Shown: positions 2,335-35,865 of the stretch, in pieces | Numbering within the stretch: the stretch's first letter is position 1 | Layout of the letters: every line of letters begins with the position of its first letter | Virus record (IMG/VR): IMGVR_UViG_3300030616_000016 | Span: 62,001-126,000 of that record | DNA: 64,000 nucleotides | Reading direction: 5' to 3' (one strand) | Made by a program: the position numbers and the translations under genes | The notes under the pieces: generated by a model | The model's database searches: none | What the model was told of the DNA's origin: nothing | Seen by the model: the letters and a program-made list of their open reading frames with translations, nothing else

Positions 2335-2361
2335 GATAATATGTATATGTAATACTCACAT

Positions 2362-2390
2362 ATTATATCATATTACTTGTAGCATGTCAA
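2362..2390 (-). promoter_or_regulatory. Consensus sigma70 promoter embedded in the last codons of dnaE-N
   Basis: Minus strand TTGACA-tgctacaagtaatatga (17 nt)-TATAAT, upstream of the endonuclease start at 2334. Confidence 0.8.
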
Positions 2391-5049: not shown

Positions 5050-5051
5050 AT

Positions 5052-5771: not shown

Positions 5772-5774
5772 TGC

Positions 5775-6305
5775 TTACCTTTCTTGTGTTGCAGCTAAGA
5801 ATACATCATTATTTTTTAATGCCATGTATGCAGCTATGGAATCTGCTACTGCTTCCTTGGTTTTTTTGGTCCACTTATCAAAGTTTGCAGCTAGTAGGTA
5901 TTTATCTGTGACGGCTTTTATGATATCATCTTTAGACGCAGATGAATTACCAGTTACTGCTTTCTTTAATCCTCTTGGTGTTATATTGGCAACAGGTATG
6001 TTTAATGTCCTGTATATGCCAATAATAGCTCCAATTGTTAATGCAGTTTTTGTAGCAGCAGATGCATTTTGAGATCCAGCTGGCAACTCCATGCATATGA
6101 TGTTTGGCTTGTATTCTTCTATAATACTAAGGATAGTATCAGATATATATCTGACATTACTTACATACTGTTCACTCTTTAAACGAAAGTTATTATCAGG
6201 CACAGTGACAATACATCCACATTTTACAATATTATCTTGATCTACGTCTATAACTGAATAACCAGTGGCGCGTATTGATGGATCTAATCCTAATGCAATT
6301 GCCAT
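5775..6305 (-). CDS. ruvC: Holliday junction resolvase RuvC
   Basis: LGLDPSIRATGYSVI, ICMELP, KKAVTGNSSASKDDI, AVADSIA. Confidence 0.9.
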   Translation of the reverse strand: MAIALGLDPSIRATGYSVIDVDQDNIVKCGCIVTVPDNNFRLKSEQYVSNVRYISDTILSIIEEYKPNIICMELPAGSQNASAATKTALTIGAIIGIYRTLNIPVANITPRGLKKAVTGNSSASKDDIIKAVTDKYLLAANFDKWTKKTKEAVADSIAAYMALKNNDVFLAATQER

Positions 6306-6315
6306 TTGTATGCTC

Positions 6316-7659
6316 CTAATATATTTCTGTCACTACTTTGTTGCTACGATATACTCTGTCTAACAGATTGATCCATTGTGATACTGGAGTGTCCCAAGTA
6401 TATTTATCAGATATCCTTAGGGCATTTTCGCATTGCCTTTTGTAAAACTCAGGATCACGTAGCTTATCAATTATATTAAGTATACTATCGTAGTTTGGCA
6501 TTGGGCGTGGAATGGAAGTTCCATCTTCTATTAAGCATTCTTTTGGCTGCCAACACAGTCCTGTTTCTTTCATAAACTCTTGTGAGGCTGCAAATTCTGG
6601 AGTAATAGTTGGTACTCCGCATGCCATTGCTTCAAGAGGAGGTAACCCAAAGCCTTCTGTAGCTAGTGACAAATAAACATCAAAGCTGTTAAACACTCTT
6701 GCAAAATCTGCTTCTGGAATACCTCTAAGTACCTGATGGTTGTTGGTTCTTAATACTTTGCCTTCTACATCCCATAAATCTTCCAGGCTAGAGAATCTCC
6801 AACCACGGTCACCTGGAGGACAATGTAGCCAGAATACTAATTCAAAACGTTCTTCTTTTAGCTTGTTAGAATTACAGTTATGACAACGATCATGCCAAAA
6901 CATTGGTTTTTTGTTGAAATAGTACTCGTAATTAATATTTGGAGCACTAATCATATTACATGCAGAACAGCGGCGAATCATATTCTTATCTACCATGCTT
7001 TTAAGTATATGAAACCCAGGTATATACTTTCTTCTCTGATTCCTTCCTACATATCCAATAAGCATTGGATTCTCGTAAGCATCTCTACTTGTACTAAGTA
7101 CTTTTGCTTGTAGTTTAGCTTTTGCTTCGGCAGAAAATGGACGATATGTCTTTTTGTTAACACCAGCTAGAATTGGTTGGCACAAAATGTCTTTATCTAT
7201 TCCTTCTAATTCATGTAGAATATCATACCCGAATTTAGTTACTGGTACAAGTGCATCAGCATAGTTCCATACATCTGTAAATTGGTGTAGCACACAGCCA
7301 TCTATGTATACTTGGGATATCCATTTGAAGTTATAGTTATTCTTCATGCCAATCATATGACTAAGCATCCATGGATCACCACATGTCCATATTATATCTG
7401 GTTTTGTACTCTCGATAACTCTTGGAGCTGTTATCTCTCCATGTTTATCATCCTTGGTTGGTTTAGGTCCATCGGAAGTATTAACCATTTTTGTGTGGTA
7501 TATTTTCCACGGAACTTCTTCTATTGCCTCAGAATGAAACCATCCAATCTGTTCTATCTCATAGTCACCAGTATTATAAATAGGAATGAATATCTCACGA
7601 ATAACTTTTGCGAAACCAGAGTGCATAGCTGCAGAGTCACCAAGGATAAGTATTTTCAT
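6316..7659 (-). CDS. GT-B (family 4-like) glycosyltransferase with zinc-finger insertion
   Basis: Start MKILILGDSA...SGFAKV; GYVGRNQRRK; EGFGLPPLEAMACGVP; CSAC...CHNC insert. Confidence 0.85.
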   Translation of the reverse strand: MKILILGDSAAMHSGFAKVIREIFIPIYNTGDYEIEQIGWFHSEAIEEVPWKIYHTKMVNTSDGPKPTKDDKHGEITAPRVIESTKPDIIWTCGDPWMLSHMIGMKNNYNFKWISQVYIDGCVLHQFTDVWNYADALVPVTKFGYDILHELEGIDKDILCQPILAGVNKKTYRPFSAEAKAKLQAKVLSTSRDAYENPMLIGYVGRNQRRKYIPGFHILKSMVDKNMIRRCSACNMISAPNINYEYYFNKKPMFWHDRCHNCNSNKLKEERFELVFWLHCPPGDRGWRFSSLEDLWDVEGKVLRTNNHQVLRGIPEADFARVFNSFDVYLSLATEGFGLPPLEAMACGVPTITPEFAASQEFMKETGLCWQPKECLIEDGTSIPRPMPNYDSILNIIDKLRDPEFYKRQCENALRISDKYTWDTPVSQWINLLDRVYRSNKVVTEIY

Positions 7660-7920: not shown

Positions 7921-7949
7921 TTGACTAACAATACTACAAGTGGTAGAAT
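7921..7949 (+). promoter_or_regulatory. sigma70-like promoter for the plus-strand glycosyltransferase
   Basis: TTGACT-17 nt-TAGAAT, 39 nt upstream of ATG 7988. Confidence 0.65.
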
Positions 7950-7987
7950 TATTAGTAATCATATTACATCATTTTGGAGAAAGAACT

Positions 7988-9136
7988 ATGAGAGGAATTC
8001 GTTTTGTTGGAGATGCATTAGCACCATCTGGATACGGCAACGCACTTAGAGATTTAGCAAAACAGTTTCATGAGCTAGGTATCCCATTCTATTTTGATCA
8101 TATAGAACATGACAAGAATAGAGCTGATTTATGTGAGTTTTGGGATAAGCATATGGATAAGTATAGACAAGAAATTCCATATGATATCATTGTAAATGTT
8201 ACTACACCAGAGTTTTATAAGTTTAAGCCAGATAAAAAGGTCGTAGCATGGACCTTCTGGGAAACAACTAAATTTCCTAGAATAGAGATTGGTGGTGGTA
8301 GAGAAGGCGATTGGGTCAAGCAGATGAATAAGCTTGATGAATTTTGGGCGCCAACAACTTTTGTGAAAGATGTTGCTATTGGTTGTGGTGTAGAAACACC
8401 TATTCAGCTGTTACCTTGGCCATGTGTAAGCAAGTATATTAACATTGAGCGTCCAAGATTAGATTCAGCAAGTATCAATAAAGCAATCAAAGATAAATTT
8501 GTTATTGGATCTATAGGTCAGTTTACTGAGCGTAAGAATTTTAGAGACTTTATTATGGCACTTTGTTCTACCTTTAACAAGGAAGAAGATGTCATTGGGC
8601 TTATCAAAACCTATAGATCAAACGATAGCTCGCGTGAAACTAATGTTGTCAGAACGGTGTTATCTGAATGGAAGAAGAGCCTAAACATTCCAGATGCTTG
8701 TAGTTTCTGTGGAGTTCATTCTATTCTCTCCGAGTCCCAGATGGTAGCGTTGCTAGACACTATTGATTTATATGTGTGTACTTCTCGGGGAGAAGGAATG
8801 TCAGGCCCATTAATTCATGCTATGGCAATGGGAAAGCCTGTTATTTCTTCTGACTTTAGTGCTATGAGTGACTTTATTTATGGCGATACATCTTTAAAGG
8901 TTGTTCGATACTGTCTAGAACCTGTTCATTCTATGTCACACATACCTTGGTATGGTCATAGACAAGACTGGGCTAGACTAAACGTTTCTGATATTAGGGA
9001 AGGAATGCGTGAAGGATATGAATTATGGAGAGATGACAGAGATAGATTTGAAGAGATTGGACAGCGTGGAAGGGATTTTGTCAGAAAGATCTACTCTGAC
9101 GAAGCAGTCCAGAAACGAATTAAGGAACTTATCTGA
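7988..9136 (+). CDS. GT-B (family 4-like) glycosyltransferase
   Basis: PSGYGNALR, GSIGQFTERKN, SRGEGMSGPLIHAMAMGKPVI. Confidence 0.85.
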   Translation: MRGIRFVGDALAPSGYGNALRDLAKQFHELGIPFYFDHIEHDKNRADLCEFWDKHMDKYRQEIPYDIIVNVTTPEFYKFKPDKKVVAWTFWETTKFPRIEIGGGREGDWVKQMNKLDEFWAPTTFVKDVAIGCGVETPIQLLPWPCVSKYINIERPRLDSASINKAIKDKFVIGSIGQFTERKNFRDFIMALCSTFNKEEDVIGLIKTYRSNDSSRETNVVRTVLSEWKKSLNIPDACSFCGVHSILSESQMVALLDTIDLYVCTSRGEGMSGPLIHAMAMGKPVISSDFSAMSDFIYGDTSLKVVRYCLEPVHSMSHIPWYGHRQDWARLNVSDIREGMREGYELWRDDRDRFEEIGQRGRDFVRKIYSDEAVQKRIKELI

Positions 9137-9437: not shown

Positions 9438-10586
9438 TTAGAACGAGTCAGCGCTTTCCTTTTCTCTAACTGCTCTTTTTATTTGACTACTTAGTCTTGC
9501 GTGTGATTGCTTTTCTTTTGCTATGTCTTCTAATATTTCTATATCTTTACTGCTTAACAACTTTCTTACTCTGATAATATCAAGGTGAGCAGCATATGAT
9601 AGAGTTGCAAACAATGTTTCCAACTCCTTTTTATCACATTCATAATTCATGACTTTATGGATCCACCCTTTATATTGCTTATATTTTTTGGATCCTATTC
9701 CACTAATTCTTCTTGCCATTGTTCTACGACTTATGTCAACTCCAAATACAACACCCAATGCACTTATTCTATTTATACCGCTTAACATAACTTTTGACTT
9801 ATGTTTATTAAATCTCATTCCTTCTACTGCTACGGCCTTATTTGCGCACTTGAAAATATCATTTATCCATTCTTTCCAGAATCTTTTAGATATGTAAGGC
9901 ATAGAGCTACTTAGTTGTATGTCGTCAGCATATCTTGAATATCTGATCCTTCCATATGGCCAACCCATGCTTGACATTGTTATATCAAACTTTCTCATAC
10001 ATAGATTTGATATTACAGGACTTGATGGAGCACCTTGTGGTAATCCATTTGTCATTGAAACAAGAGGTATTAATGGTATCTTATATTTTCTGCAGCATGT
10101 ATCTACAGTATGTAATGATATAAGCATCTTTCTAATATGTTTTGCTTTAATAGATGGAAAGAAGTTCTTAATATCCATACTAATCATTATTCTAGCTCCA
10201 TCATGTATCGACTGTAATTTGTTAATTGCAGTTTGGAAGCGTCTAGAACGTCTTAGTATTCTTCTAAAAGATTCTTGTGTTGTAAACAGCGGTTTTGGAC
10301 TATATGCTAAGCTATGTCCATTTCTGTCATACTTTTGCAATAGCCATGAGACATATCTTTGTGCCGTTTTTAAGTCTTCGTCTGGCTCATGTAAATGCCT
10401 GATGCCACCTGATCTTTTTCTTATCATGTGGTGTGTATATCTTGAGTCTCTATCGTTTGAGTTTTGTTGTAAGTCTTCAAACAATTGCTGAATTGTAATA
10501 CCAGATGGCAAGACTAGACTTAGAAAATTGTCAGGAGTTATATCATGAAGTCTCAGTTTCTTCTTTATCTGATTCTGTTCCATCAT
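9438..10586 (-). CDS. Retron-type reverse transcriptase
   Basis: IRKRSGGIRHLHEPDEDLKTAQR, MDIKNFFPSI, GLPQGAPSSPVISN, YSRYADDI, FNKHKSK; ALG at the position of the retron VTG motif. Confidence 0.88.
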   Translation of the reverse strand: MMEQNQIKKKLRLHDITPDNFLSLVLPSGITIQQLFEDLQQNSNDRDSRYTHHMIRKRSGGIRHLHEPDEDLKTAQRYVSWLLQKYDRNGHSLAYSPKPLFTTQESFRRILRRSRRFQTAINKLQSIHDGARIMISMDIKNFFPSIKAKHIRKMLISLHTVDTCCRKYKIPLIPLVSMTNGLPQGAPSSPVISNLCMRKFDITMSSMGWPYGRIRYSRYADDIQLSSSMPYISKRFWKEWINDIFKCANKAVAVEGMRFNKHKSKVMLSGINRISALGVVFGVDISRRTMARRISGIGSKKYKQYKGWIHKVMNYECDKKELETLFATLSYAAHLDIIRVRKLLSSKDIEILEDIAKEKQSHARLSSQIKRAVREKESADSF

Positions 10587-11667
10587 CTCCGCCTTCCGAT
10601 TCCGTATTGTCAGATATTAATTTGGTTATATCATTGTTTGCTGCAAATTCATATAGTGCTATTATTCCTTGCACGCTTTCTTCGCCTATGTAGTAGTATC
10701 CACCACGCTTGGTGATTTTACCATCTACAATCATTTGATCTACTAAAAATCTTTCTTCACTAAACCCATGATTAAAGATGAATGGATATTTTACTTCGGC
10801 TCCCTCCGGCATAGTACCAGACTGTCTAGTCTTATTGATTTTCATGTAATGCATGAAGCCAATAATTTTCTCTTTCTTCTTTCCATCTTCTTCTACAATG
10901 GCAGCTGGAGCTTCGCTTTTGCTACCTCTACGAGTCATCAGCCTTACGTGTGTAAAATGCTTAACCGCATTTCCTCCCTTAACGAGAGTTAGGTCACCAT
11001 ATCCACCAATATTGGTGTATATTTGACCAATCATTATGATTGTTGTGTTTGTCTTTGCTGCAGGACCACAAGCAAGTCTTAGGAACTGGCTCATTTTTCT
11101 TTGAAGAACACCGATGGTATCATCGTTTAGGCTACGGTTAGTACCGGTTTTACTTTCGAGTTCTGCGCGTGGAAGCAGACCGCCAATTGAATCAATAACT
11201 ACGATGTCTACTAAATTCTCTCTCATAATGTCGAGACATTTATCTAGCATGTTCTCCATCGTATCTTTCTCAATTATAAAGAGCTCATCTGTATTGACTC
11301 CTTGTACTTTTAACCACTCTTTATCCAATGCTTCTTCTGCATCAACCCAGCATGCAATACCATGGTTTTTCTGAACTTCTGCTACACATCTTGCACATGC
11401 AGTGCCTTTAGCTGTCTGTTCTGGTCCGGCGATTGTAACAATTTTACCTCTAGGAAAACCTCCGCCTAAATAGTCATCCCAGCCTTTAATGCCGGTTGAT
11501 ATTCTACCGTAATCCTCTAGTCCAAAATGTACAATTTGATTTTCATCATCGATGTCTTTGTTAATAGAAGTCGCTACTCTTTTTAGACGAGCCATCTTCT
11601 CTGCTTTTATATCTTGTGGAGATACAATCTTTTCTTCACTAGTATCTTTGCTTTTTCTCTTAGCCAT
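10543..11667 (-). CDS. recA: RecA recombinase with non-canonical P-loop
   Basis: ISTG...D..LGGGFPRGKIV, WVDAEEALD, VVIDSIGGLLPRAEL, QRKMSQFLR, GGNAVKH; Walker A reads GPEQTAKGT. Confidence 0.93.
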   Translation of the reverse strand: MAKRKSKDTSEEKIVSPQDIKAEKMARLKRVATSINKDIDDENQIVHFGLEDYGRISTGIKGWDDYLGGGFPRGKIVTIAGPEQTAKGTACARCVAEVQKNHGIACWVDAEEALDKEWLKVQGVNTDELFIIEKDTMENMLDKCLDIMRENLVDIVVIDSIGGLLPRAELESKTGTNRSLNDDTIGVLQRKMSQFLRLACGPAAKTNTTIIMIGQIYTNIGGYGDLTLVKGGNAVKHFTHVRLMTRRGSKSEAPAAIVEEDGKKKEKIIGFMHYMKINKTRQSGTMPEGAEVKYPFIFNHGFSEERFLVDQMIVDGKITKRGGYYYIGEESVQGIIALYEFAANNDITKLISDNTESEGGDDGTESDKEETETS

Positions 11668-17052: not shown

Positions 17053-18045
17053 CTAGACTTTGTTGAAGTCTTTAATTACATGACTATGACATCTAGGACA
17101 TTCCAGATTATTTTCATCATTAATTACAAACACATTATTACATGCAGGACATGTTATTCCTTCCTCTTCATCTGCATCTATAATAAGAGGATCAGTAATA
17201 TGGTTATCAATTGGATCATCGATAGGATCGCCATATCCAGCCCAATTACGAATGTTTTGAGAAGTTCTGTGATGTCTGTTACCAAACCTAGGATTGTAAT
17301 AGCTACCACCTATTGGAAACATAGTTGATTTTCCTTCAACTACTTCATCTTTGTCTTCATCATATGAATGTGTAGTCATAGATTTTACAAGCTCATTTAT
17401 CTCTTCTCTACATTTCTTATATGTTTCTGTGTAATCTGCAGTTACAACATTGAGATCAATATTGTCAATGACAAGCTTGGGGTTTTTCTGAACATATTTG
17501 ACTAAGATGTTACCAGATTTATTTCCTACAAGCATTACTGCCCATCCATGTTGCTGAAGCATCTCATCTGCAGCATCTACATCCTGTCCACTCCAGAATG
17601 TAGGCATGTTTACATGAGAATGCCAATGGAAATTCATGCGGCTGTATATTGATTTGCCAATGTCTTGTTTAATAGTCAGCATATCTTCTTCTGATATATC
17701 ATCAACAGATATATCTTTAAACTCCTCAGAGTCTTCAATATATTTGTTGATGTAGTTATCGATAATATCATGCTCTCCCTTAATGAGAGGAAGCTCAATT
17801 CTCTTACATCTGTCTTTATTACACAAACGAAAGTAGCCTGAGCTTGCTACTTGTTTAACGATGAATACATTATCAATGATAAGATTACCATTCTTGTCTT
17901 GGATGATGGTACCAAGTCCACCACATTCGGTTGAACAAGCATTGATCCATCCTCTGATCTTTTCTCTTAGGATTGCTGGCATGTATATATTGATGCTTTC
18001 TTTAGTTTCTAAAGCATCTTTCTCGGATTCGTTCTTGATTTGCAT
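17053..18045 (-). CDS. JAB/MPN+ metallo-isopeptidase (deubiquitinase-like)
   Basis: TECGGLG (catalytic Glu) and WHSHVNMPTFWSGQD (HxH-x7-S-x2-D JAMM motif). Confidence 0.85.
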   Translation of the reverse strand: MQIKNESEKDALETKESINIYMPAILREKIRGWINACSTECGGLGTIIQDKNGNLIIDNVFIVKQVASSGYFRLCNKDRCKRIELPLIKGEHDIIDNYINKYIEDSEEFKDISVDDISEEDMLTIKQDIGKSIYSRMNFHWHSHVNMPTFWSGQDVDAADEMLQQHGWAVMLVGNKSGNILVKYVQKNPKLVIDNIDLNVVTADYTETYKKCREEINELVKSMTTHSYDEDKDEVVEGKSTMFPIGGSYYNPRFGNRHHRTSQNIRNWAGYGDPIDDPIDNHITDPLIIDADEEEGITCPACNNVFVINDENNLECPRCHSHVIKDFNKV

Positions 18046-18071
18046 ATCTTTCCTTTCTATGCAAGGAGTTA

Positions 18072-19109
18072 TTATGATGCTGATGTATCTACGCGTCCAT
18101 CAGGCAATAGTTTCAAGTCTTCTTTTTTTGCATATGCTTTCCAGTGGTCAATATCTGCATATGTATCGCCAGAATTACAACTTTCAAGATATTCTTTCAG
18201 AATGGCAAATATTACTCCATAACTACCACATTTAAGATACTGAGGAATGGCTCTGCTAATATTCCCCAAGCATGGACCACCATCAACATTAACATGAGGA
18301 TGTGGATTTGAAGTTTCTTTACCTGGAGGTTCAATAACTGATGTAATGCGTATTCCTGTACTATTATATGGAATACTAACAAGATATGTTCCCATATAAT
18401 AGTACATGTCATTTTCTTTTATCCAGATAGGTGGTGTAAGCCCCTTAATTGAGTCTGGAGCGAACTCAATGTTAGCATATGCACCTGATTCATATAATTT
18501 CATTACTCCAGTAACTGCTTTGTCAATCATCATTTCTTTCTCTTCACCTTCAGGTATGTTTTCTATATCTTTTAACCTTTCCTTGGCTATTTCAAGGCGT
18601 TTCATAAGAGTAAGTTGATGTGTTTGACAAGCTTTCATTTGGTTTTCTGTGAGCCTCAAAGATGTGAGAAGACTAGTTTTCTCACTATCTACATTACCAA
18701 GAAGCTGACGATAAATACATTCCCGTACATCGTTTCTCTTGTTTGCAATGTCTCGTTGAGATCTACGACTAGAGCCACTACCTCTTCTAGAAAGAATTAT
18801 TCGCGCGTCTCTAAAACTTTTAAATGCGTTTGAGATTACTGCGTCAAATATATCTTCTCTAGAAGCAAGTATTTGTAAACAGTTTGGTGAATGGGTAATA
18901 GTTTTTCTTGACTCGTCAACAAAAGGTTCCCATACATTAGATATGTTAGGAATATCTTCAATTGGTGTAGGATTTATAATGCAAAGAACCTCTGAAGTAA
19001 AATCCTGGAATCTATCACTAATGATAATGGTTTTTGTCAGAGAGATCTCAAATGTTCTGAAAACAGCAAATAAATCTGAGCTGTTTGCAACTCCCATATT
19101 ATCAATCAT
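18072..19109 (-). CDS. Prokaryotic E2-like (UBC-fold) protein with N-terminal coiled coil
   Basis: HPHVNVDGGPCLGN matches the E2 active-site pattern HPN..dG.iCL; lies between the Ubl and JAB genes. Confidence 0.75.
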   Translation of the reverse strand: MIDNMGVANSSDLFAVFRTFEISLTKTIIISDRFQDFTSEVLCIINPTPIEDIPNISNVWEPFVDESRKTITHSPNCLQILASREDIFDAVISNAFKSFRDARIILSRRGSGSSRRSQRDIANKRNDVRECIYRQLLGNVDSEKTSLLTSLRLTENQMKACQTHQLTLMKRLEIAKERLKDIENIPEGEEKEMMIDKAVTGVMKLYESGAYANIEFAPDSIKGLTPPIWIKENDMYYYMGTYLVSIPYNSTGIRITSVIEPPGKETSNPHPHVNVDGGPCLGNISRAIPQYLKCGSYGVIFAILKEYLESCNSGDTYADIDHWKAYAKKEDLKLLPDGRVDTSAS

Positions 19110-19147
19110 ATTTGAAAGCCTTTCTGTGTTTTATGATTAGGGTAAAG

Positions 19148-19193
19148 AAAAGTCAAGTACTATAGTAAGTGTTTACTATAATACTTGACTTTT
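19148..19193. terminator. Long imperfect hairpin after the Ubl gene, overlapping a possible minus-strand promoter
   Basis: aaaagtcaagta-c-tatagtaa-gtgt-ttactata-a-tacttgactttt; the minus strand reads TTGACT-17 nt-TAAAAC toward the E2 gene. Confidence 0.6.
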
Positions 19194-19244
19194 TTGTGGC
19201 CACATAACTACACAAAAGTGTAGCTACATTTTTAGGGCACTTTA

Positions 19245-19460
19245 CTACTTGCCGCCATCAACCTTCTGCTGCAGAACGACGATGTCGCCGTTATCCAGGA
19301 CTGTGTCGAGGTCAGCAGCGTCGCCGTTTACACGGACTTTACGACTGCCCAGCTCAACTCCAGCTGTTGCAAGAAGGTTCGCGACGGTTGCGTTTGCCGG
19401 AGTGAGGCTGTAAGTCTTAACTTCGCCTTCACCCTGAGCCAGCTGTACACATGTAACCAT
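19245..19460 (-). CDS. Ubiquitin-like (ThiS/MoaD beta-grasp) protein ending GG-K
   Basis: MVTCVQLAQG...ATVANLLATAG...VRVNG...LDNGDIVVLQQKVDGGK*; AAGGAG RBS before ATG 19460. Confidence 0.85.
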   Translation of the reverse strand: MVTCVQLAQGEGEVKTYSLTPANATVANLLATAGVELGSRKVRVNGDAADLDTVLDNGDIVVLQQKVDGGK

Positions 19461-19499
19461 TGCAGAACTCCTTAAATAGGGTTCATGTTTTGTCAACGT

Positions 19500-20174
19500 T
19501 CAACTACAAGGCCACACTAGCCTGTAGTCCGCTGACCCTTTTAGAAACATTAATTCATCCATAGATAAATTATGTTCATTTGCAACTATAAATCCTATGT
19601 TTCCGTAGTCATCGAATCTCATAAGAGATATAAAGTTTTCTATTCCGAACCTATTTTTTGATTCGTTTCCACAATAAACGCAATTTGGAAATCCGTATAG
19701 CATTTTAGAACCACATAGACCACACTCTTCTTTAGACTCCAGTTTGTAAACTCTTAGTTCTTTTAGTATTCTTTCATTAATCATAAACGATTGTTGCCCA
19801 AGTTTTACCTCTGTACGTTCATGCAAATCTACAAGAGCATCAAATGGAATTCGATTGATCCAGTAATTTAATGGTCTTAAGCTAGCTGTTCTATTTCTAT
19901 ATATAAGTAAGTTAACTAGTATTTTGTCTGCACATATGGGAGAGCCTTCTTTAAAAATATATCCCATAATTTTATTAGTTCCAATAACATTTCTAGAGCT
20001 TCCAATTTCTGGCACTGCTAATGTTAAGCGATTTGGGCTTAGGACTATATCCCATTTCTTTGATAAATCTTGAGGCTCGTCTGGGTTGTGAGGAGTTATA
20101 TGCGCCAGCTTTTCTTCTATAGCTCCACGAAATATTGAGCTTTTTCTTCGCTCTAGACATTGCGACATATACAA
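19500..20174 (-). CDS. Hypothetical protein with double zinc ribbon (start may be downstream)
   Basis: CGLCG...CVYCG; the 5' end overlaps the UvrD gene by about 180 nt. Confidence 0.55.
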   Translation of the reverse strand: MYMSQCLERRKSSIFRGAIEEKLAHITPHNPDEPQDLSKKWDIVLSPNRLTLAVPEIGSSRNVIGTNKIMGYIFKEGSPICADKILVNLLIYRNRTASLRPLNYWINRIPFDALVDLHERTEVKLGQQSFMINERILKELRVYKLESKEECGLCGSKMLYGFPNCVYCGNESKNRFGIENFISLMRFDDYGNIGFIVANEHNLSMDELMFLKGSADYRLVWPCS

Positions 20175-21735
20175 CTCTCCTTTCGGACTCTATTTCGTCT
20201 TCTTCTACCATTGTGCATGGATAGTATCCTTCTTCCATCCCGCACATATAAACAATATCAAACTCAAGTCCCTTTACTCCGTGAACAGTAGCTATAGTCA
20301 CATCTCCTGCATCGTTATCTGAGTTGCTTGTAAGTTTGATCTTATTTACTAGGTCAATCATTGAGTCACAAGAGTCAGACATATAATCTATAATTTCATA
20401 TAAGGATATCTGATACTTACTCTCGTCCATTTCATCAAGGAGTTTACAAGCATCTTTGACTCCTTGCATATCATTGTTTAGGATCTTGTCTATTATCTCT
20501 ACTATGTCCTCATTATCAACAAGAATTTTAGATTTTTCTTGGCTATTTTCTCTGTTAATAAATTGGTTAAGAAATCGTTTGCCTAATCCTCTTTTCAAGT
20601 ATGCAAGAAATTGTGAGGTTCTTTCTATATTGATTCCGTCTTCTTTATTAATAGGATGAAGCCCACATATAAGATCAATAAGTCTTTTTGTCTTACCTCT
20701 TTCTGATAGTGACAGTCCACCTATTCTAGTATATGGTATAGCACGTTGATCAAAATATATAGCTACAGTATCTAGTTGTCTATGTGTACGACCTAATATA
20801 GCCACTGAATTGCCAGCTTCCATATATCTTTGTATGTCTCGTGCCAAAAACTGATTCTCATCAGATTCTGAGTTGAATGGATAGAAATCAACATTAGGTA
20901 TACTAGCTTCTTCTGCAGTAATTTCACTGCTATAAGTATCTGCATTGCAGGATATTAGTTTATTACAATATCCAGCAATATGATTGTCAAATCTCCATGT
21001 ATATGATAATGGAAGTACTTTGGCGCCTGATTCTTTTATGAGCATTTCTGTATTTTCGTAACATGCACCACGAAATTGGTACAAGCACTGATTTTGGTCG
21101 CCTACTACTGTGAATCCTCTGTTAAAATCATACGTAAGTTCTTTAACCATATTGTATTGAACAGTGTTGGTATCTTGCCATTCATCCACAATAATTCCAT
21201 CGCAACCTACGTCTCTCATATATTCTATGGAGTCGTAAAGAAGATCACTGAAGTCTTTGACATGGTTCTTTAGCTTGGTAGTTTTGTATATCTTAGCGAG
21301 AGAATCTAAGCTGTCTTGTACTGACAGATTATTTACTTCTACATTATTTTGAAGCTTAATCTTTGCAGCTTCAAGTAAAAGCTTATAGATATCACTGTCA
21401 GGAGAGTATCCCATTTTCTTTATACAGCTTCTTATCAACTCTGTAGATTCGTTCTGGTCAATAATCTCGAATTCTTGTTTGTTATTCTTGAGGAGTTGTA
21501 AGCCCAAGCCATGGAATGTTCCAATGAAAACAGCATTGTTCCCAGTTAGTCTACTTGTAAGTTCTTTTGCTGCCTTATTAGTAAATGTAATAGCAACGAA
21601 CTTGTAATCTATATCAGCAACACCATAAGCTAATGTGGTTGTTTTGCCACTGCCAGGCGCAGCCATAACTACGTTTTTGTTGGCTGGGTCTTTCATATGC
21701 AAGATAATTGCTTGCTGTTCTTCAGTTGGATTCAT
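19993..21735 (-). CDS. uvrD: UvrD/Rep/PcrA-family SF1 helicase
   Basis: AAPGSGKTT, ITFTNKAA, VDEWQDTN, VGDQNQCLYQFRGA, TVHGVKGLEF, ERRVVYVAMSRAK. Confidence 0.92.
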   Translation of the reverse strand: MNPTEEQQAIILHMKDPANKNVVMAAPGSGKTTTLAYGVADIDYKFVAITFTNKAAKELTSRLTGNNAVFIGTFHGLGLQLLKNNKQEFEIIDQNESTELIRSCIKKMGYSPDSDIYKLLLEAAKIKLQNNVEVNNLSVQDSLDSLAKIYKTTKLKNHVKDFSDLLYDSIEYMRDVGCDGIIVDEWQDTNTVQYNMVKELTYDFNRGFTVVGDQNQCLYQFRGACYENTEMLIKESGAKVLPLSYTWRFDNHIAGYCNKLISCNADTYSSEITAEEASIPNVDFYPFNSESDENQFLARDIQRYMEAGNSVAILGRTHRQLDTVAIYFDQRAIPYTRIGGLSLSERGKTKRLIDLICGLHPINKEDGINIERTSQFLAYLKRGLGKRFLNQFINRENSQEKSKILVDNEDIVEIIDKILNNDMQGVKDACKLLDEMDESKYQISLYEIIDYMSDSCDSMIDLVNKIKLTSNSDNDAGDVTIATVHGVKGLEFDIVYMCGMEEGYYPCTMVEEDEIESERRVVYVAMSRAKKKLNISWSYRRKAGAYNSSQPRRASRFIKEMGYSPKPKSLNISSARNWKL

Positions 21736-21739
21736 ATTA

Positions 21740-21994
21740 TTAGTCTGTTGTAGTGTTAAGGTGGTATTCAATCTCATCAGTAATGGATTTGGTGTCTTTA
21801 TGCAGCGTTTGTTCTCCCTTAATACTGAGTTTGTACTTATTTCTTTTCTTTGGATCTGCATATTTTGTTATAGAGATGCTTATGCGTTCATCTTTCTTTT
21901 GTGCTTGTTCTTGCGGCTGTTGTGTTTGTTCTGTTACATCACCTGGCATTTTAATATATCTCCTAATTTGTCTAGGTCTGATAAAAGATCCCAT
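21740..21994 (-). CDS. Small hypothetical protein (likely start MPGDV)
   Basis: ORF track. Confidence 0.5.
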   Translation of the reverse strand: MGSFIRPRQIRRYIKMPGDVTEQTQQPQEQAQKKDERISISITKYADPKKRNKYKLSIKGEQTLHKDTKSITDEIEYHLNTTTD

Positions 21995-22647
21995 TGTTTA
22001 AACATATGAAGGTCATTTATTAGTATTTTTTTACCACAGTAATAACATTCTGTAAAGTATTCTGTGTGTGGACCAATTAATTTGTAGCGCAATATACCAT
22101 CATTAAATAAATTATATGAAGCACATGAAGGACATAGGTATGGAATTAGTGCTAACATTGTTGATAGTATATTACCACGTTTTATACGAGCTGGATTTGA
22201 TTTGTATATTGTTGTAAAACCAACTACTGAATTTAATAATGATCGAGACATAGCCCCAGATGAATTTCTTCTTAATTCTTCTAGTATTGCTGTTTTTGAG
22301 TTTATTACTATGCGTTGACATGCAATACTAATACGTTGAACAGAATCATAATGCATATAATCTGGATATATAGGTGGTATCTTTATCTCTGACATAGTTC
22401 CAATCATTTGTTCAATGATAGGTGTAACTGACCAGTTATACAAATCTCTTCCTACTAAAGAGCATCTTGTTATAGCACATGGAGGAACATATACATGTTT
22501 TTGATAACCGGGCGACAAATTATTAGTCATAGCTTTTGTAATGTCAGCATATGATACAGTAGGCACTGTCCATTTAGGGAGTATAGTGTTTTTAAGTTCT
22601 AGTGTGGAACAGATTGCTTTATTAAGACAGTTTATACATGGATGCAT
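21934..22647 (-). CDS. Hypothetical cysteine-containing protein
   Basis: CINC, CPSC...CYYCG. Confidence 0.6.
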   Translation of the reverse strand: MHPCINCLNKAICSTLELKNTILPKWTVPTVSYADITKAMTNNLSPGYQKHVYVPPCAITRCSLVGRDLYNWSVTPIIEQMIGTMSEIKIPPIYPDYMHYDSVQRISIACQRIVINSKTAILEELRRNSSGAMSRSLLNSVVGFTTIYKSNPARIKRGNILSTMLALIPYLCPSCASYNLFNDGILRYKLIGPHTEYFTECYYCGKKILINDLHMFKQWDLLSDLDKLGDILKCQVM

Positions 22648-22667
22648 TGCTCTTTTCTCACAGAATA

Positions 22668-23135
22668 TTATTTAGATGTCTCGTATATTGCTTTGATGTC
22701 TATGTTTGATGAGTCTTCCAATAGTAATTTTACTAGTCCTATTTTATTCTTGCTGTTAAATGAAGACATGATTGCTTTAAGTATATTATCATTGTATGCG
22801 CCACAAAATTGGCATATAATCGAGCTTCCCAGACACATACAATTTGAACATCTTTCTGTAAGTTTAGATGTAATACTTATATAATCGCGTGATATTGTTA
22901 CTGGCAAGCAACCACAACTATCTATTGCCAAAATATCATAAGTATCGTTGTCTATGTATCCAACTATTATTTTTTTTGCACGCATAAATTCTTTATATAT
23001 AAGGAGATTATAAGCATTATGTTCTACTTCAAATGGTATTAATATACTATCACTGTCTTGTAAGGGTTTTGTAGACCCTTCAGAAAGTGTAAGCCCAGTG
23101 AATAATATACGATCAAAACGACACGATTTACTCAT
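22668..23135 (-). CDS. Hypothetical protein with zinc ribbon
   Basis: CSNC...CQFCG; 4-nt overlap with the E1 gene. Confidence 0.6.
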   Translation of the reverse strand: MSKSCRFDRILFTGLTLSEGSTKPLQDSDSILIPFEVEHNAYNLLIYKEFMRAKKIIVGYIDNDTYDILAIDSCGCLPVTISRDYISITSKLTERCSNCMCLGSSIICQFCGAYNDNILKAIMSSFNSKNKIGLVKLLLEDSSNIDIKAIYETSK

Positions 23136-23896
23136 GGTCTTTTATCCTTAAAGATATCCCATGTCTTGAAATTAATATCTATTCCAAATGGAATTGTTTC
23201 TTCTGTTCCATTTGCAATATGATAAATACATGAGGATATCCAGCTTGCTGTCCACATTACTGGAAATATAATGCTCTTTTCTGTACACTTGATATCAGGC
23301 ATGTCTTCATCATTATCAAGATTGTTTTCCTCGAACAGCTGAACTTCATCTGGCATGTAAGGAAGTACTGCGTATGCTTCGCATTGAGTTGCTCCAATTC
23401 TTGAGTCTATAAACATGGAAATACGAGCCATATTTTGACAACTATATTCAAACAGGAGTTGTCTTGCCTTCATGTTATCGACGGCAGAAATAATAATGTC
23501 AGCTTTTCTAGCGTATTTGTCAACATCGTCTACGCTTTCAAGTCTGTCTTTATGAAATTCCCACTCCCAGTTGGGCTTTGAATATCCGCTTATAATCTTT
23601 TCAAGTTCAGCTACTTTTAGGGCTCCAGTTTGCCGCCAATTATAAATTTGGTTTGCCTGATTATGGACTTCAATTGAATCAAAGTCTACAATAGTACATT
23701 TGGTGATACCCATTTTTGCCATAGCAACTGCAGCAAATGAACCTATGCTTCCAGCTCCAAGCATAAATACATTAAGCTTCATCAGCTTATCAATGTCAAC
23801 TAGATCAAAGTGACCTTTATAAATTTCTTCATTCTCATTGAATACAAATTCTTCTTCCTGGTTAGACATTGAGTAATTCCTTTCTGGTCTACTCAC
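23132..23896 (-). CDS. ThiF/MoeB/E1-family adenylating enzyme
   Basis: LGAGSIGS, VDFDSIEVHNQANQ, ISAVDNMKAR, DSRIG; C-terminal Cys in IKCTEKS. Confidence 0.9.
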   Translation of the reverse strand: MSRPERNYSMSNQEEEFVFNENEEIYKGHFDLVDIDKLMKLNVFMLGAGSIGSFAAVAMAKMGITKCTIVDFDSIEVHNQANQIYNWRQTGALKVAELEKIISGYSKPNWEWEFHKDRLESVDDVDKYARKADIIISAVDNMKARQLLFEYSCQNMARISMFIDSRIGATQCEAYAVLPYMPDEVQLFEENNLDNDEDMPDIKCTEKSIIFPVMWTASWISSCIYHIANGTEETIPFGIDINFKTWDIFKDKRP

Positions 23897-24602
23897 CGAA
23901 TATTGATTGCATCGAAAAGTATGTATAACATACTAGCTCATATTCCTGAATCCATTCTTCTCTTTTTGTTCCGCTTTTATCTCTTATGATGTAGCTCGGA
24001 TGATAAAGACAGATTATTGGAATATCATTATTGTTATTGTTATAGTAAAATGTTTCTCCAACTAAATCTCCCATTTTAGTTGTAGTATTTACATCTTTTA
24101 TTAATGCTATAGCTGATTGTTTGCCAAGGCAAACAATCAACCATGGATCCAGTATTTCTAATTCTTTGTGAAGAAATGGAATACATTCTTCAACACAGTC
24201 TGTGGGTGGAGGACAAGTTTTCTCACCTTGCCTGAATGGTTTGCATCTGGCTATGTTTGTTAAGTAGCATTCTGATGCTGGCAATTCGGCGGCTTCTGTC
24301 ATCTCATTGAGTTCTTGTCCAGCTGGACCACAAAATGGGATGCCTTGGCTATCTTCCTGGGCCCCAGGAGATTCGCCGATAAAAACTATGTTGTATCGGT
24401 AGCTTCCTCTGCTAAAAACAGGACTAGATGCTATATTTCTTAGTCTGCATTTTGTGCAGTCTAGTACGTCCTGTTCTAAGTCTTGGAGCTGACTTTCTTT
24501 ACTTATATTTTGAGTATCTCCAGACATTTTGCGTAAATCCACTAGGGGTTTTGAGTCTAATGCGCTCTTTGTCAATACTGACAATCTCTGAGCCTGGTAC
24601 AA
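23889..24602 (-). CDS. Uracil-DNA glycosylase family 4 (Fe-S)
   Basis: CTKCRL, IGESPGAQED, PFCGPAG, TNIARCKP, YHPSY. Confidence 0.92.
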   Translation of the reverse strand: MYQAQRLSVLTKSALDSKPLVDLRKMSGDTQNISKESQLQDLEQDVLDCTKCRLRNIASSPVFSRGSYRYNIVFIGESPGAQEDSQGIPFCGPAGQELNEMTEAAELPASECYLTNIARCKPFRQGEKTCPPPTDCVEECIPFLHKELEILDPWLIVCLGKQSAIALIKDVNTTTKMGDLVGETFYYNNNNNDIPIICLYHPSYIIRDKSGTKREEWIQEYELVCYTYFSMQSIFGE

Positions 24603-30459: not shown

Positions 30460-31626
30460 CTAATTCATCGAAAATTGCGTTCCATACTGGCTACGTCTTA
30501 CATCTTCTCCAAAGGCTTTAGGTTCCCCTTGCCCAGGGGTACAAAATGCAAAATTCAAAATATTACTAGATGCAAGGGCATCTCTATCGTGTTTGGCACC
30601 ACAAGTGCAAGTCCAATATCTGTCACTTAGCTTAAGATTATTATTTATAGCGCCGCACTGGTTACACATCTTGCTGGATGGTTCAAATCTTCCTATAGTC
30701 AAAACATGCTTTCCATACCAACCTGCCTTATACTCAAGAAAGGTACGAAAAGTATACCATCCAACATCAGAGATAGCCTTGGCCAAACAATGATTCTTCA
30801 CCATTCCAGAAACGTTTAAATCCTCAAGACACACTGCTTGGTTCTCGTCAATGAGCCTTTTGGACAATTTATGCAAAAAATCTTTACGTTGATTAGAAAT
30901 CTTCTCATGTATCAACGCTACCTTCCTACGAGCCTTGTTTCTATTTGAAGAACCTTTCTTCTTCTTTGATAATTGTTTTTGCTTTCTTGCCAATCTTCTT
31001 TCAAGTTTCTTTAGGTATCTTGGATTATCTATTTTCTCGCCTGTTGATAGTGTTGCAAAATGTTTTAATCCAACGTCAACACCTACACTATTATCTCGTT
31101 CAGGATTACATTTGATAGGTAATTCTTCTCCATTGTCAACCAAAATAGAAGCAAAGTATTTCCCAGAAGGAGCCATGAATATAGTTACAGTTTTAATATT
31201 GCCTTCAAATTGTCTATGGAATTTGCATTTGATGCCATCACGGAATTTCATTACATATAGCCTATTATTATCAAAATCCACATTACTTCCTTGTGGAAAT
31301 TGACAAGATTGCTTTTTGAATTTCTTCTTAAATTGAGGATATCTTGCCTGTTTCTTAAAAAACCGCCGGAAAGCATTGTCAAGGTTTCTAAAGGCCATTT
31401 GCAAAGATTGACTATTAACTTCCTTCAGCCAACCATGCTCAGATTTCATATGTTTCAATTGCTTTATCAAATCAAAACAGGAAGGAGATTTCCCCGTTTT
31501 TTGATAAGACTCTGTTTTCTTTTGGAGTCCCAAATTGTATATGAACCGTACACAACCAAAATGCTTCACAAGAAGCTCCTGTTGTTTTTTGTTGGGGTAT
31601 ATTTTGTATTTATATGCTCGTATCAT
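30460..31626 (-). CDS. tnpB: TnpB RNA-guided endonuclease, apparently intact
   Basis: MIRAYKYKIYP HTH; RuvC motifs GVDVGLK, LEDL, DRDALAS; CNQCG/CTCG zinc ribbon. Confidence 0.95.
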   Translation of the reverse strand: MIRAYKYKIYPNKKQQELLVKHFGCVRFIYNLGLQKKTESYQKTGKSPSCFDLIKQLKHMKSEHGWLKEVNSQSLQMAFRNLDNAFRRFFKKQARYPQFKKKFKKQSCQFPQGSNVDFDNNRLYVMKFRDGIKCKFHRQFEGNIKTVTIFMAPSGKYFASILVDNGEELPIKCNPERDNSVGVDVGLKHFATLSTGEKIDNPRYLKKLERRLARKQKQLSKKKKGSSNRNKARRKVALIHEKISNQRKDFLHKLSKRLIDENQAVCLEDLNVSGMVKNHCLAKAISDVGWYTFRTFLEYKAGWYGKHVLTIGRFEPSSKMCNQCGAINNNLKLSDRYWTCTCGAKHDRDALASSNILNFAFCTPGQGEPKAFGEDVRRSQYGTQFSMN

Positions 31627-31635
31627 TATATTTAT

Positions 31636-31664
31636 AGTATAGCACAGGTTTCTGTAAATGTCAA
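31636..31664 (-). promoter_or_regulatory. sigma70 promoter in the IS left end driving tnpB
   Basis: TTGACA-17 nt-TATACT. Confidence 0.75.
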
Positions 31665-31732
31665 GAGAAAAACGCATTCTTATATCCCCATGGCTAAAGC
31701 CAGGGGTCTTACGAATGCACCTTGATAAAAGA

Positions 31733-34860: not shown

Positions 34861-35865
34861 TTATCTCATTAAATATAGATTGCGTAGTTCATCTCTATCA
34901 TAAAACACATTACGGATTTCTTGTCTAATATTATAGTCTTGAAATATTCTATCATAAAAACTAGTAGTATCTCCACCAAGAAATTCTATTGCATCATTTA
35001 TTGGTTGAGTTGTATTATGGTCTGGAGTAATTCCAATTCCTTCTTTCTCGACTCCATATATATCATATATAATTCCTGCTGTGTAATTGAATCCATCGCC
35101 TCTATAAAACTTATATGCTTGTACGGCTCTAAAAGCACCAAATGTTTTAGAGCCAAATATTGTAGCTTCTGAATAGTATTTCATTGCTGAAACAAATATT
35201 TCTGCGAATTGAAATGTACAAGCACTCGTAAGTATACACATATTATTTTTATGAAGCCATGTATTTTCTGTTTGCACAGACATATCTGCAAAATCACTAA
35301 ACGCAAATGCTGTATTATTAATTGCTGCAACTAATTCATTAGAATAAGTTTTGTGAGTAAATCCAGCAAGCAGTTTTATGTATTCGCCTAATCCGCCATT
35401 ATTACAATATCTAAGATCGAGAATTAAAGAATTGCATTCGAATTCATACATGTAATGGTTGACATTAAGCATAACAGTTTCTGCCATTCCAGCAGACATT
35501 TTATCTACAGATATATATAATATATCTGGTTCAATTTTATATATTTTTAATGTTCCTGATGCTTCATTATCTGATATGGCTGCTTCCATTTCTTCGCTGT
35601 TTATATACCTTGTATATAAATCTGTTTCAGAACGGAGTCTATTTATATATGATTCTAAAGTATCTGAAGTTAAAGGTGGTTGAACGTTTCCATAAATATA
35701 GCCTTGTGATAATACCGAATATGCTTCTTGTAGATATTCTTCATCTACGTTTGTAATTTGATTTTCTGTATTTGGATTGCTACTATTTCCTCCTCCTCCA
35801 CAGCCATTACAAAATATAATTATGATACATAATATGAACAAATTAATTTTGATATTTTTTATCAA
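34861..35865 (-). CDS. Lipoprotein with an S41 (tail-specific protease)-like domain, catalytic residues apparently lost
   Basis: Lipobox-like IIFCNGC; DLRYCNNGG; TFQFAEI and TFGAF where S41 enzymes have TASASEI and TFGKG. Confidence 0.65.
   Translation of the reverse strand: MIKNIKINLFILCIIIIFCNGCGGGGNSSNPNTENQITNVDEEYLQEAYSVLSQGYIYGNVQPPLTSDTLESYINRLRSETDLYTRYINSEEMEAAISDNEASGTLKIYKIEPDILYISVDKMSAGMAETVMLNVNHYMYEFECNSLILDLRYCNNGGLGEYIKLLAGFTHKTYSNELVAAINNTAFAFSDFADMSVQTENTWLHKNNMCILTSACTFQFAEIFVSAMKYYSEATIFGSKTFGAFRAVQAYKFYRGDGFNYTAGIIYDIYGVEKEGIGITPDHNTTQPINDAIEFLGGDTTSFYDRIFQDYNIRQEIRNVFYDRDELRNLYLMR

Follow-up and report, generated by a model that had tools for sequence, protein, structure and literature searches.

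Whether a bacterial virus can carry a complete pathway for conjugating a ubiquitin-like modifier (Ubl) is the question raised by a locus in the uncultivated viral genome IMGVR_UViG_3300030616_000016, a contig of 231,647 bp whose positions 62,001 to 126,000 were analyzed as a single stretch of 64,000 nucleotides (the window). In bacteria, Ubl conjugation has so far been shown only as an anti-phage defense, in cyclic oligonucleotide-based antiphage signaling systems (CBASS) of type II and in Bil systems, with a comparable role suspected for Bub, and a phage-encoded cascade would reverse this relationship. The window contains genes for a ThiF-type activating enzyme (E1), a Ubl precursor, a protein resembling ubiquitin-conjugating enzymes (E2) and a JAB peptidase; judging from their sequences and from the company that their relatives keep, these genes probably constitute a self-contained, phage-encoded Ubl-conjugation cascade that operates without a separate ligase (E3).

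An original prediction, made by eye from the DNA, had assigned these four functions, and the assignments were upheld when profile, structure and motif tests were applied. Its description of the locus was also accurate in coordinates, strand and gene order, in the GG-K ending of the Ubl, the PCLG of the E2-like protein and the histidines of the JAB peptidase, and in the spacing of 3.7 kb within the set. All four open reading frames (ORFs) are on the minus strand, where Ubl, E2-like and JAB are consecutive genes and the E1 stop lies 3,672 nucleotides upstream of the Ubl start. The elements of the set are as follows:

23132-23896, minus strand: E1, ThiF-type, 254 residues (Pfam ThiF)
19245-19460, minus strand: Ubl precursor, 71 residues, beta-grasp, ending VDGG-K
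19148-19229, minus strand: two hairpins in the gap that separates the Ubl gene from the E2 gene (RNA fold)
18072-19109, minus strand: E2-like protein, 345 residues, with a C-terminal UBC/E2 domain
17053-18045, minus strand: JAB/JAMM (MPN+) metallopeptidase, 330 residues, with a JAMM motif and a zinc ribbon

An E2-like protein with an HPN-like triad

The E2-like ORF (18072-19109) holds ...PHPHVNVDGGPCLGN..., a segment that includes PCLG. As a single sequence it had no match in Pfam, PADLOC, PHROGs, NCBIfam or the PDB, and only two close relatives were found among 5.8 billion proteins. A profile search of 1.84 billion cluster representatives, in turn, recovered 1,490 relatives at E<=1e-3, and the C-terminal 130-150 residues are common to all of them. 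Across 60 members of this family Pro271, His272, Cys280 and Gly282 are invariant and His270 is nearly so, which gives the motif H-P-H-[VI]-x3-G-x-P-C-[LW]-G-N. This triad is a variant with His in place of Asn (HPH versus HPN), and its third residue stands eight residues from the Cys, the same spacing as that from HPN to Cys in classical E2s.

Profile comparisons relate the conserved domain to ubiquitin-conjugating enzymes. Pfam UQ_con was reached at 2.9e-5 by two of the 60 family members, and a 57-sequence profile of the domain matched human UBE2L3 in the PDB at 3.6e-4, with E2s making up nearly all of the best 60 of its 85 PDB matches. In the alignment to UBE2L3, Cys280 falls on the catalytic Cys86 and HPH270-272 on the HPN triad.

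The AlphaFold2 model of the protein (predicted local distance difference test score, pLDDT, 86) points to the same fold, so that what had been the shakiest of the four assignments is now the new point with the best support. It predicts a small N-terminal beta domain (residues ~1-85), a coiled coil of ~95 residues (89-183) and a UBC-fold domain (~186-335), the last of which is modeled as alpha-beta4-loop-helices in UBC order. The top PDB matches of this model in Foldseek were almost all E2s (Ubc1, UbcH5, Ube2G, Cdc34 and Ubc13), Ubc1 being matched with a probability of 0.95 and a template modeling (TM) score of 0.48, and target TM scores were about 0.5 overall; the E-values were only ~0.1 because the whole-length query includes a long part outside the UBC domain. 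In a viral structure library, the proteins that the predicted structure matched were uncharacterized proteins of uncultured phages.

Four genes that recur together

IMG/VR and GTDB (one genome per species) were searched with a degenerate DNA pattern for the E2 HPH...PCLGN motif only. The IMG/VR search returned 14 other stretches, from viral contigs of 12-180 kb, and when hidden Markov models of the four families were run on these loci, JAB and E1 were found beside E2 wherever the stretch was long enough and Ubl was found in most. GTDB yielded 46 loci, all in metagenome-assembled genomes (MAGs), which came from Myxococcota, Planctomycetota, several phyla of the candidate phyla radiation (CPR), Gammaproteobacteria and Chloroflexota; here Ubl-E2-JAB-E1 was seen again, together with a JAB-less E2-E1-Ubl subtype. 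All-against-all clustering of the ORFs of 21 loci gave exactly four recurrent families (E2 in 21, JAB in 17, E1 in 15 and Ubl in at least 16), usually in the order Ubl-E2-JAB-E1, and no fifth conserved gene that might serve as E3, target or adaptor emerged from these neighbors. Altogether, the four families occur together in nearly all of the ~65 independent loci that were retrieved via E2 alone, so the arrangement is more than chance. Since nothing else is conserved, and since the N-terminal region of E2 varies from ~200 to 860 residues across the family, it is possible that the E2 N-terminus selects the target.

Three phages related to the one in the window (L001 and one contig each from ENA and Logan; E2 identity 45-57%) keep the order UDG-E1-(2-3 ORFs)-UvrD-(ORF)-Ubl-E2-JAB. 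In the window, the genes in front of E1 and the four ORFs between E1 and Ubl are:

23889-24602, minus strand: UDG-family gene
22668-23135, minus strand: Cys-rich ORF, 155 residues
21934-22647, minus strand: Cys-rich ORF, 237 residues
19993-21861, minus strand: UvrD helicase
19500-20174, minus strand: ORF of ~155-224 residues

No family was found for the ORFs at 21934-23135 and 19500-20174, which are kept in the closest relatives only. UvrD was rejected as a part of the module, as it recurs only in the wider lineage of the window phage, and the two Cys-rich ORFs were rejected along with a 332-residue ORF that follows JAB, all of these being conserved at most in the closest relative.

The original prediction counted the E1 in the set in spite of its distance, a choice borne out by the adjacency of E1 in remoter phage and MAG loci. 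For example, the order is E1-Ubl-E2-JAB in locus L003 and Ubl-E2-JAB-E1 in L006 and L007, and E1 lies directly beside Ubl-E2-JAB in L003, L006, L007, L010-L013, L017, L019-L023 and many of L024-L069. Because E1 recurs around E2, often adjacent to it, in these other loci, the distant E1 of the window can be assigned to the set.

Six of the GTDB loci are on contigs of 1.3-6 Mb; therefore, the module is not confined to phages. One Myxococcota chromosome (OZ223209.1, 5.98 Mb) holds three copies (L028, L037, L057), and chromosomes of this phylum (also L024, L035, L063) contain several copies of Ubl-E2-JAB to which E1 is mostly not adjacent, with Ubls in which PKVDGG precedes a tail of five residues (VVVNQ, AVAHQ, VATHQ and similar). 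The neighbors of chromosomal copies are mixed and include PolA, SIR2-STALD, an AAA ATPase and Kelch proteins. The JAB-less E2-E1-Ubl subtype occurs in CPR and other MAGs (L025, L027, L029, L030, L036, L042, L066, L068). Two architectural variants were also observed, among L010, L012 and L019 (upstream of the E2) and among L014, L017 and L044: a long Ubl of 150 residues with an N-terminal coiled-coil extension, which ends KVAGG-I or KVAGG-NAC, and tandem duplicated E2 genes within one module.

Flavobacterium phage FpV4 (L070, NC_041872.1 57944-70495, locus 1839-6618) was considered as a further member. Immediately behind a UDG gene it encodes four proteins that follow the order of the module, including gp53, whose Ubl-like N-terminus ends KQVKSGG and is followed by a 205-residue tail, the JAMM peptidase gp51, and gp50, an E1 that is annotated as a 'thiamine biosynthesis protein' (ThiF); phages of this kind have been cultured on the host Flavobacterium psychrophilum. 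FpV4 was rejected as a member of the module, as gp52, in the position of E2, has an unknown fold and shows no resemblance to the E2 profile (hhalign probability 0.2). In addition, ~29 records of Bacteroides crAss-like phages match the E1.

The window holds one member of a large family of four-gene modules, as yet without a name, which is widespread among large phages and in some bacteria and has apparently gone unstudied. In the full-text literature searched, no description of a phage module of this kind was found, which is not proof of absence, and the nearest mention is of an Asgard archaeal virus with E1-like proteins only (10.1101/2021.07.29.454249).

A minimal E1 and an Rpn11-like peptidase

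The E1 matches Pfam ThiF at E=1.4e-21 and the PADLOC model of an E1-E2 adenylation domain at 5.9e-18. When a profile of five orthologues was compared with the PDB, UBA6 (1.7e-13) and UBA5 (4.9e-13) ranked first, with TcdA, ThiF, Uba4, MccB and MoeB behind them, and the ThiF-type proteins of PDB entries 9egb, 9egc and 9egd also match. The protein consists of one adenylation domain of the ThiF/MoeB type (254 residues) and has no multidomain architecture. Invariant among the five orthologues are the GAGxIGS loop (GAGSIGS in the window), Asp71/Asp73, Lys94, Asp140 and Arg145, and the sole invariant Cys is Cys204, which is in a K-C-T-E motif of the crossover-loop region. We provisionally take Cys204 to occupy the position of MoeB C187 and UBA5 C250, the printed PDB alignments ending before this region. 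Although its best NCBIfam matches are the ThiF and MoeB models, the E1 falls under the trusted cut-off of every ThiF/MoeB/UbaA/TcdA/PRTRC model in that collection (for example, 82 bits versus 159, and 37 bits versus 450 for UbaA); judged by these scores, it has no orthologue among the named E1-like enzymes.

The JAB ORF (17053-18045) contains HWHSHVNMPTFWSGQD. Its match to Pfam Prok-JAB as a single sequence is weak (1.8e-3), and a complete JAMM site (E40, H142-x-H144-x7-S152-x2-D155) is invariant in nine orthologues. The profile of the family matched Rpn11 in the PDB at 1.2e-9 and the Rpn11 homologue of Caldiarchaeum at 1e-6. An AlphaFold2 model (pLDDT 74) had 105 PDB matches at E<=1e-3, and the leading matches to this predicted structure were Rpn11, the ubiquitin-bound Caldiarchaeum Rpn11 homologue (6fnn, TM 0.76) and Pyrococcus furiosus JAMM1 in complex with SAMP2. 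The closest relatives are isopeptidases (Rpn11, AMSH and BRCC36). A C-terminal CPxC...CPxC zinc ribbon (residues 298-320) is kept in many orthologues. Locus L007 keeps JAB even though its Ubl already ends in GG, which suggests that the peptidase has a role beyond maturation.

A Ubl precursor and its probable expression signals

The Ubl ORF called mechanically runs from a TTG (19245-19496), and the likely start is an ATG at 19460 that has AAGGAG 7 nucleotides before it. From this ATG the protein has 71 residues and the C-terminus ...QQKVDGGK, that is, K66-V-D-G-G plus one Lys. The single sequence matches Pfam ThiS weakly (2.5e-3). In comparison with the PDB, a profile of four orthologues matched archaeal SAMP2 (5lda_B) at 3.1e-5, end to end and with the terminal Gly-Gly in register, and PF1061 at 8e-5; the SAMP2 match of the Ubl and the JAMM1 match of the JAB peptidase belong to the same complex, 5lda. 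An Atlas model of the Ubl has predicted TM scores of 0.85-0.88 to ThiS-family clusters, many of them viral.

Among 38 orthologues the C-terminal consensus is P-K-[VI]-x-G-G, or a single G, and 37 of them have 1-6 variable residues past the last Gly (K in the window, KIS in the nearest relative, and I, R, SR, NL, N, NAC or VATHQ in others). The original prediction noted a single Lys after GG, and also that JAB peptidases trim Ubl precursors to expose GG. A residue past GG has proved to be a trait of the family, and such variable tails suggest that the protein is a precursor that requires trimming. The mass spectrometric assay that had been proposed, a search for di-Gly remnants, needs amending: with a conserved Lys at four residues' distance from the terminal Gly, trypsin would leave VDGG and not di-Gly.

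In GC content the Ubl gene exceeds every other 210-nucleotide stretch of the 64-kb window (56.2% against a mean of 35.8%; standard deviation, SD, 4.3; ~4.7 SD), and its GC content at third codon positions is 56%, versus 19-31% in neighboring genes. The contrast is also seen in L001, L004 and L005, is weaker in L006 and L007, and is not present in L003; its occurrence across relatives points to maintained codon selection and not to recent transfer. This codon bias suggests that high expression of the Ubl has been maintained, an overlapping constraint at the RNA level being an alternative. Past the Ubl stop lie two strong hairpins, one of 12 bp and one of 21 bp, the latter with a U-rich run behind it, and this region (19148-19229) folds at -45.1 kcal/mol (z = -6.9 versus shuffles). 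L001 and L005 have classic terminators, with a GC stem and a U-tract, at the same position after Ubl. The hairpins are probably a terminator or attenuator that would let the Ubl transcript outnumber the transcripts of the enzymes. Taken together, the GC and codon bias and the hairpin after the gene suggest that the supply of Ubl far exceeds that of the enzymes, as would befit a consumable substrate.

A proposed conjugation cascade and its purpose

The observed domain identities, catalytic residues, four-gene linkage and precursor tails can be assembled into a proposed pathway. The 71-residue Ubl would be made in excess as a GG-Lys precursor, from which the JAMM peptidase would cut off the terminal Lys and expose Gly70. 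The single-domain E1, which probably forms a homodimer as MoeB and UBA5 do, would adenylate Gly70 and take the Ubl onto Cys204 as a thioester, after which the Ubl would be handed to Cys280 of the E2, with His272 in the role of the HPN Asn. The E2 would then move the Ubl to a lysine of a target chosen by its variable N-terminal domain and coiled coil; for Bil, too, a loop of the E2 has been proposed to select the target (PMC10557695). The same JAMM enzyme may cleave the isopeptide bond, making the tagging reversible.

Several observations weigh against such a cascade. The statistics that support the E2 assignment are moderate (3.6e-4 for the profile, and E ~0.1 for Foldseek over the whole length), and the Ubl belongs to the ThiS/MoaD type, whose usual task in bacteria is to carry sulfur. 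The E1 is without a ubiquitin-fold domain for recruiting E2, its whole family has Asn82 in place of the canonical Arg of the N-R-Q ATP-binding motif, and the N-terminal R-Q of the L003, L006 and L007 E1s is K-G-H in the window; because of the Asn82 substitution and the loss of R-Q in the window lineage, adenylation by this E1 is not guaranteed. Finally, the Ubls of JAB-less loci (L027, L030, L036, L068) end E-R-P-Q-G-S, with a one-residue tail. JAB-less loci had been expected to have tail-less Ubls, an expectation that was rejected when all four Ubls detected in them were seen to end RPQG-S; therefore, the tail is not strictly dependent on JAB.

As for purpose, the cascade most likely serves to manipulate host or phage proteins during infection, and it would be expressed along with the replication and repair genes that surround it. 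The original prediction had named modification of host proteins, control of the phage's own proteins or reversal of a host defense as possible uses, all of which are conjectural. A role in the phage's own infection programme is favored because the module has a fixed place among these genes in this lineage and is abundant on large viral contigs. A bolder and tentative proposal, which we would put at rather less than an even chance, is that the module is a first example of an unrecognized and widespread lineage, found mainly in large phages and combining a classical E2 of the HPH type that contains its own adaptor, a JAMM peptidase resembling Rpn11, a minimal E1 and a pro-Ubl similar to ThiS and SAMP2, that offensively tags host proteins to disable or redirect them.

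The best surviving alternative, although an unlikely one, is that the module is phage-borne cargo for defense or superinfection exclusion, which tags structural proteins of competing phages as Bil does. All characterized prokaryotic E1/E2/Ubl systems (type II CBASS as well as Bil) are antiviral and Bub is suspected to be so (PMC10557695, 10.1101/2023.09.04.556158, PMC11601596). In keeping with such a role, the module is also found on chromosome-sized contigs of Myxococcota and Planctomycetota, where one copy adjoins a defense-type neighbor, the SIR2-STALD gene. However, its position in a replication and repair block (UDG, UvrD, helicase, RecA, DnaE) is fixed in four phages with E2s that are 45-57% identical, which is unlike a mobile defense island, and it is common on large viral contigs (46-232 kb). 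PADLOC models, moreover, match neither the E2 nor the Ubl, nor the JAB peptidase convincingly.

It is quite improbable that the Ubl is instead a sulfur carrier, which the E1 would adenylate and which, as a thiocarboxylate, would donate sulfur to tRNA, DNA or a cofactor, with the JAB enzyme only trimming it. Precursors are indeed trimmed by QbsD and Mec+ in bacterial sulfur pathways. The Ubl is ThiS/MoaD-like, the best NCBIfam models for the E1 are ThiF and MoeB, and the homologous E1 of cultured Flavobacterium phages carries the ThiF annotation. Yet every locus has an E2, with its invariant Cys and HPN-like triad, for which sulfur transfer offers no role, the E1 is far under the ThiF/MoeB cut-offs and nearer to UBA6 and UBA5 in the PDB, and the JAB peptidase is nearest to isopeptidases. 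The original prediction had also noted that thiamine and molybdopterin genes are missing, and this agrees with family searches in which neither these nor sulfur-relay families were found in the 50 other window ORFs of >=120 residues (E<=1e-5) or in the ten ORFs around the four-gene set. In particular, neither the window ORFs of >=120 residues nor the recurrent neighbors yielded a rhodanese, a cysteine desulfurase, ThiG/ThiH, MoaE or a PP-loop thiolase.

Least probable of all is that Ubl and JAB assist assembly of the virion or of a replication factory, as has been proposed for the lambda tail assembly protein I and the JAB domain of protein K, with the E2-like protein as a scaffold: a Ubl and JAB pair is a known theme of phage tail-assembly clusters (Iyer et al. 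2006, PMC1779556) and the E2-like protein has a long predicted coiled coil, but the module lies among replication genes and not structural genes, the catalytic Cys and HPH, which a scaffold could do without, are invariant in 60 diverse members, E1 is consistently linked, and neither of the lambda fusions (Ubl to a C-terminal domain, JAB to NlpC/P60) is found here.

If the preferred reading, a phage-encoded conjugation cascade, is real, it would provide phages with a protein-tagging weapon or regulator that is spread over hundreds of diverged families. Offensive tagging, if true, would be the counterpart in bacterial viruses of the exploits of ubiquitination by eukaryotic viruses, and the mirror image of Bil. 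To a specialist, the surprise would be that a complete E1-E2-DUB-Ubl set of classical type (DUB, deubiquitinase) is a standard part of large phage genomes. Since Pfam, NCBIfam, PHROGs and PADLOC all lack a model of the E2 family, such genes are annotated as hypothetical everywhere, and the E1 is wrongly labeled as a thiamine biosynthesis protein. The compactness of the module (four small proteins, no E3 and an E2 N-terminus that may be swappable) suits it to study of a minimal E1-E2 mechanism and possibly to use as a programmable tagging tool.

The phage and other genes of the window

The window has a GC content of 36%, and its minus strand carries almost every gene. PHROG and Pfam matches to a DnaE-like polymerase, helicases, RecA, an RNA polymerase beta-like subunit, a tail fiber and a nicotinamide phosphoribosyltransferase support the view that the contig belongs to a large tailed phage. 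Among the cultured phages of INPHARED, neither megablast of the region nor tblastn of the E2 gave a match, and no polymerase there exceeds 34% identity to that of the window phage, so the phage has no close cultured relative in INPHARED.

Other features of the window are worth recording. The DnaE-like polymerase (327-5049, minus strand) looks split into an 893-residue N-terminal part (2368-5049) and a 391-residue HHH_6 part (327-1502), which are separated by a 289-residue LAGLIDADG homing-endonuclease ORF in another frame (1465-2334); an intron, or a split gene that has been invaded, might account for this. A TnpB/IS605 OrfB gene (Cas12f-like, with HTH and TNB domains) is present within the phage genome at 30460-31677 on the minus strand, and a second PHROG 'transposase' match falls somewhere within 34.8-64 kb. 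A reverse transcriptase gene (9438-10586, minus strand; RVT_1, PHROG 2825/1423) directly follows RecA (10543-11667), a pair that is kept in two related phage contigs, with a glycosyltransferase coming next on the other strand (7940-9136 in the window).

A cluster of eukaryote-like or signaling and stress genes extends over 34861-59629. It includes an S41 peptidase (34861-35865), a protein-kinase-like ORF that is under the Pfam cut-off (36800-38455) and an SPFH/Band 7 protein (40060-41046), as well as matches to a PP2C phosphatase, a LuxR-type regulator, an MqsR-type toxin and YdjM that were not placed on ORFs. The presence of a kinase, a phosphatase and a putative Ubl cascade within one phage is a notable combination.

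Comparison with known systems

The module is not Bil, CBASS, Bub, sampylation, a ThiS/MoaD pathway or the lambda tail assembly pair, although it shares parts with each of them. The likest in function is Bil (BilABCD, types I and II; classes 6d and 6c of Iyer), which has the same four parts (Ubl, E2, JAB DUB and E1) and no E3. In type II Bil, residues past the reactive Gly of the Ubl are removed by JAB, as is proposed here, and the Bil E2 is thought to pick the target (PMC10557695). The likeness to Bil-type operons that the original prediction drew therefore stands for the four parts but does not extend to membership, as E1, E2 and Ubl differ in their defining features. The Bil E1 is multidomain, with inactive and active adenylation domains and an inserted Cys domain (PMC10557695), in contrast to the 254-residue single-domain E1 of the phage; the Bil E2 lacks the HPN histidine and is of the CEHH type or has a His after the Cys (PMC1779556, PMC10557695), whereas the HPH of the E2 described here stands eight residues before its Cys; and the Bil Ubl is ubiquitin/ISG15-like and less ThiS-like, whereas the phage Ubl resembles ThiS, MoaD and SAMP2. 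In addition, Bil is bacterial and this module is phage-encoded, as well as present on bacterial MAG contigs, and no Bil chain was among the listed PDB matches of the E2, JAB and E1 profiles.

Type II CBASS, with Cap2 and Cap3, shares E1, E2 and JAB chemistry with the module, which is reflected in the match of the E1 to the PADLOC E1-E2 models. However, Cap2 has E2 fused to E1 and conjugates the CD-NTase itself, with no free Ubl, whereas E1 and E2 are separate genes here, and family searches found no CD-NTase or effector in the window. Bub (6E/DUF6527) is likewise an operon of E1, E2 and Ubl with a suspected conflict function (PMC11601596), but it uses oxyesters, E1 and E2 without catalytic Cys and a serine protease, whereas both Cys are invariant and the protease is of the JAMM type in the module, which has no DUF6527 match.

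ThiS-ThiF and MoaD-MoeB pairs have the same Ubl and E1 folds; they lack an E2 and need partner sulfur enzymes, which were not found in the window, and the E1 scores under the equivalog cut-offs. The lambda pair (TAPI/TAPK) comprises a fused Ubl beside a JAB plus NlpC/P60 protein and a tail-tip gene, as opposed to the free-standing Ubl, zinc-ribbon JAB and replication neighbors of the window.

Archaeal systems provide the remaining comparisons. Sampylation (SAMP1/2, UbaA, and HvJAMM1 or P. furiosus JAMM1) supplies the best solved relative of the Ubl, SAMP2, as well as JAMM1, which the JAB peptidase matches, and both systems use a small single-domain E1. Sampylation has no E2, whereas every locus here has one, SAMPs end in GG without a tail, and the UbaA model scores the phage E1 far below its cut-off. 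The operon of Caldiarchaeum subterraneum (ubiquitin, E1, E2, a RING E3 and an Rpn11 homologue) shares an HPN-like E2 triad, an Rpn11-like JAMM enzyme and compactness with the phage set, which differs from it in having no RING E3, a ThiS-type modifier and not ubiquitin, a long N-terminal extension of the E2 and a minimal E1. By profile and model comparison with solved structures, the E2 triad and the Rpn11-like DUB resemble archaeal and eukaryotic enzymes more closely than any bacterial ones. An HPN-like E2 triad together with an Rpn11-like DUB makes the module of interest for the question of how the ubiquitin system arose from prokaryotic ancestors, and, if the proposed lineage is real, the closeness of its E2 and DUB to archaeal and eukaryotic enzymes, relative to the solved bacterial defense enzymes, would bear on the origin of the eukaryotic E2/Rpn11 toolkit.

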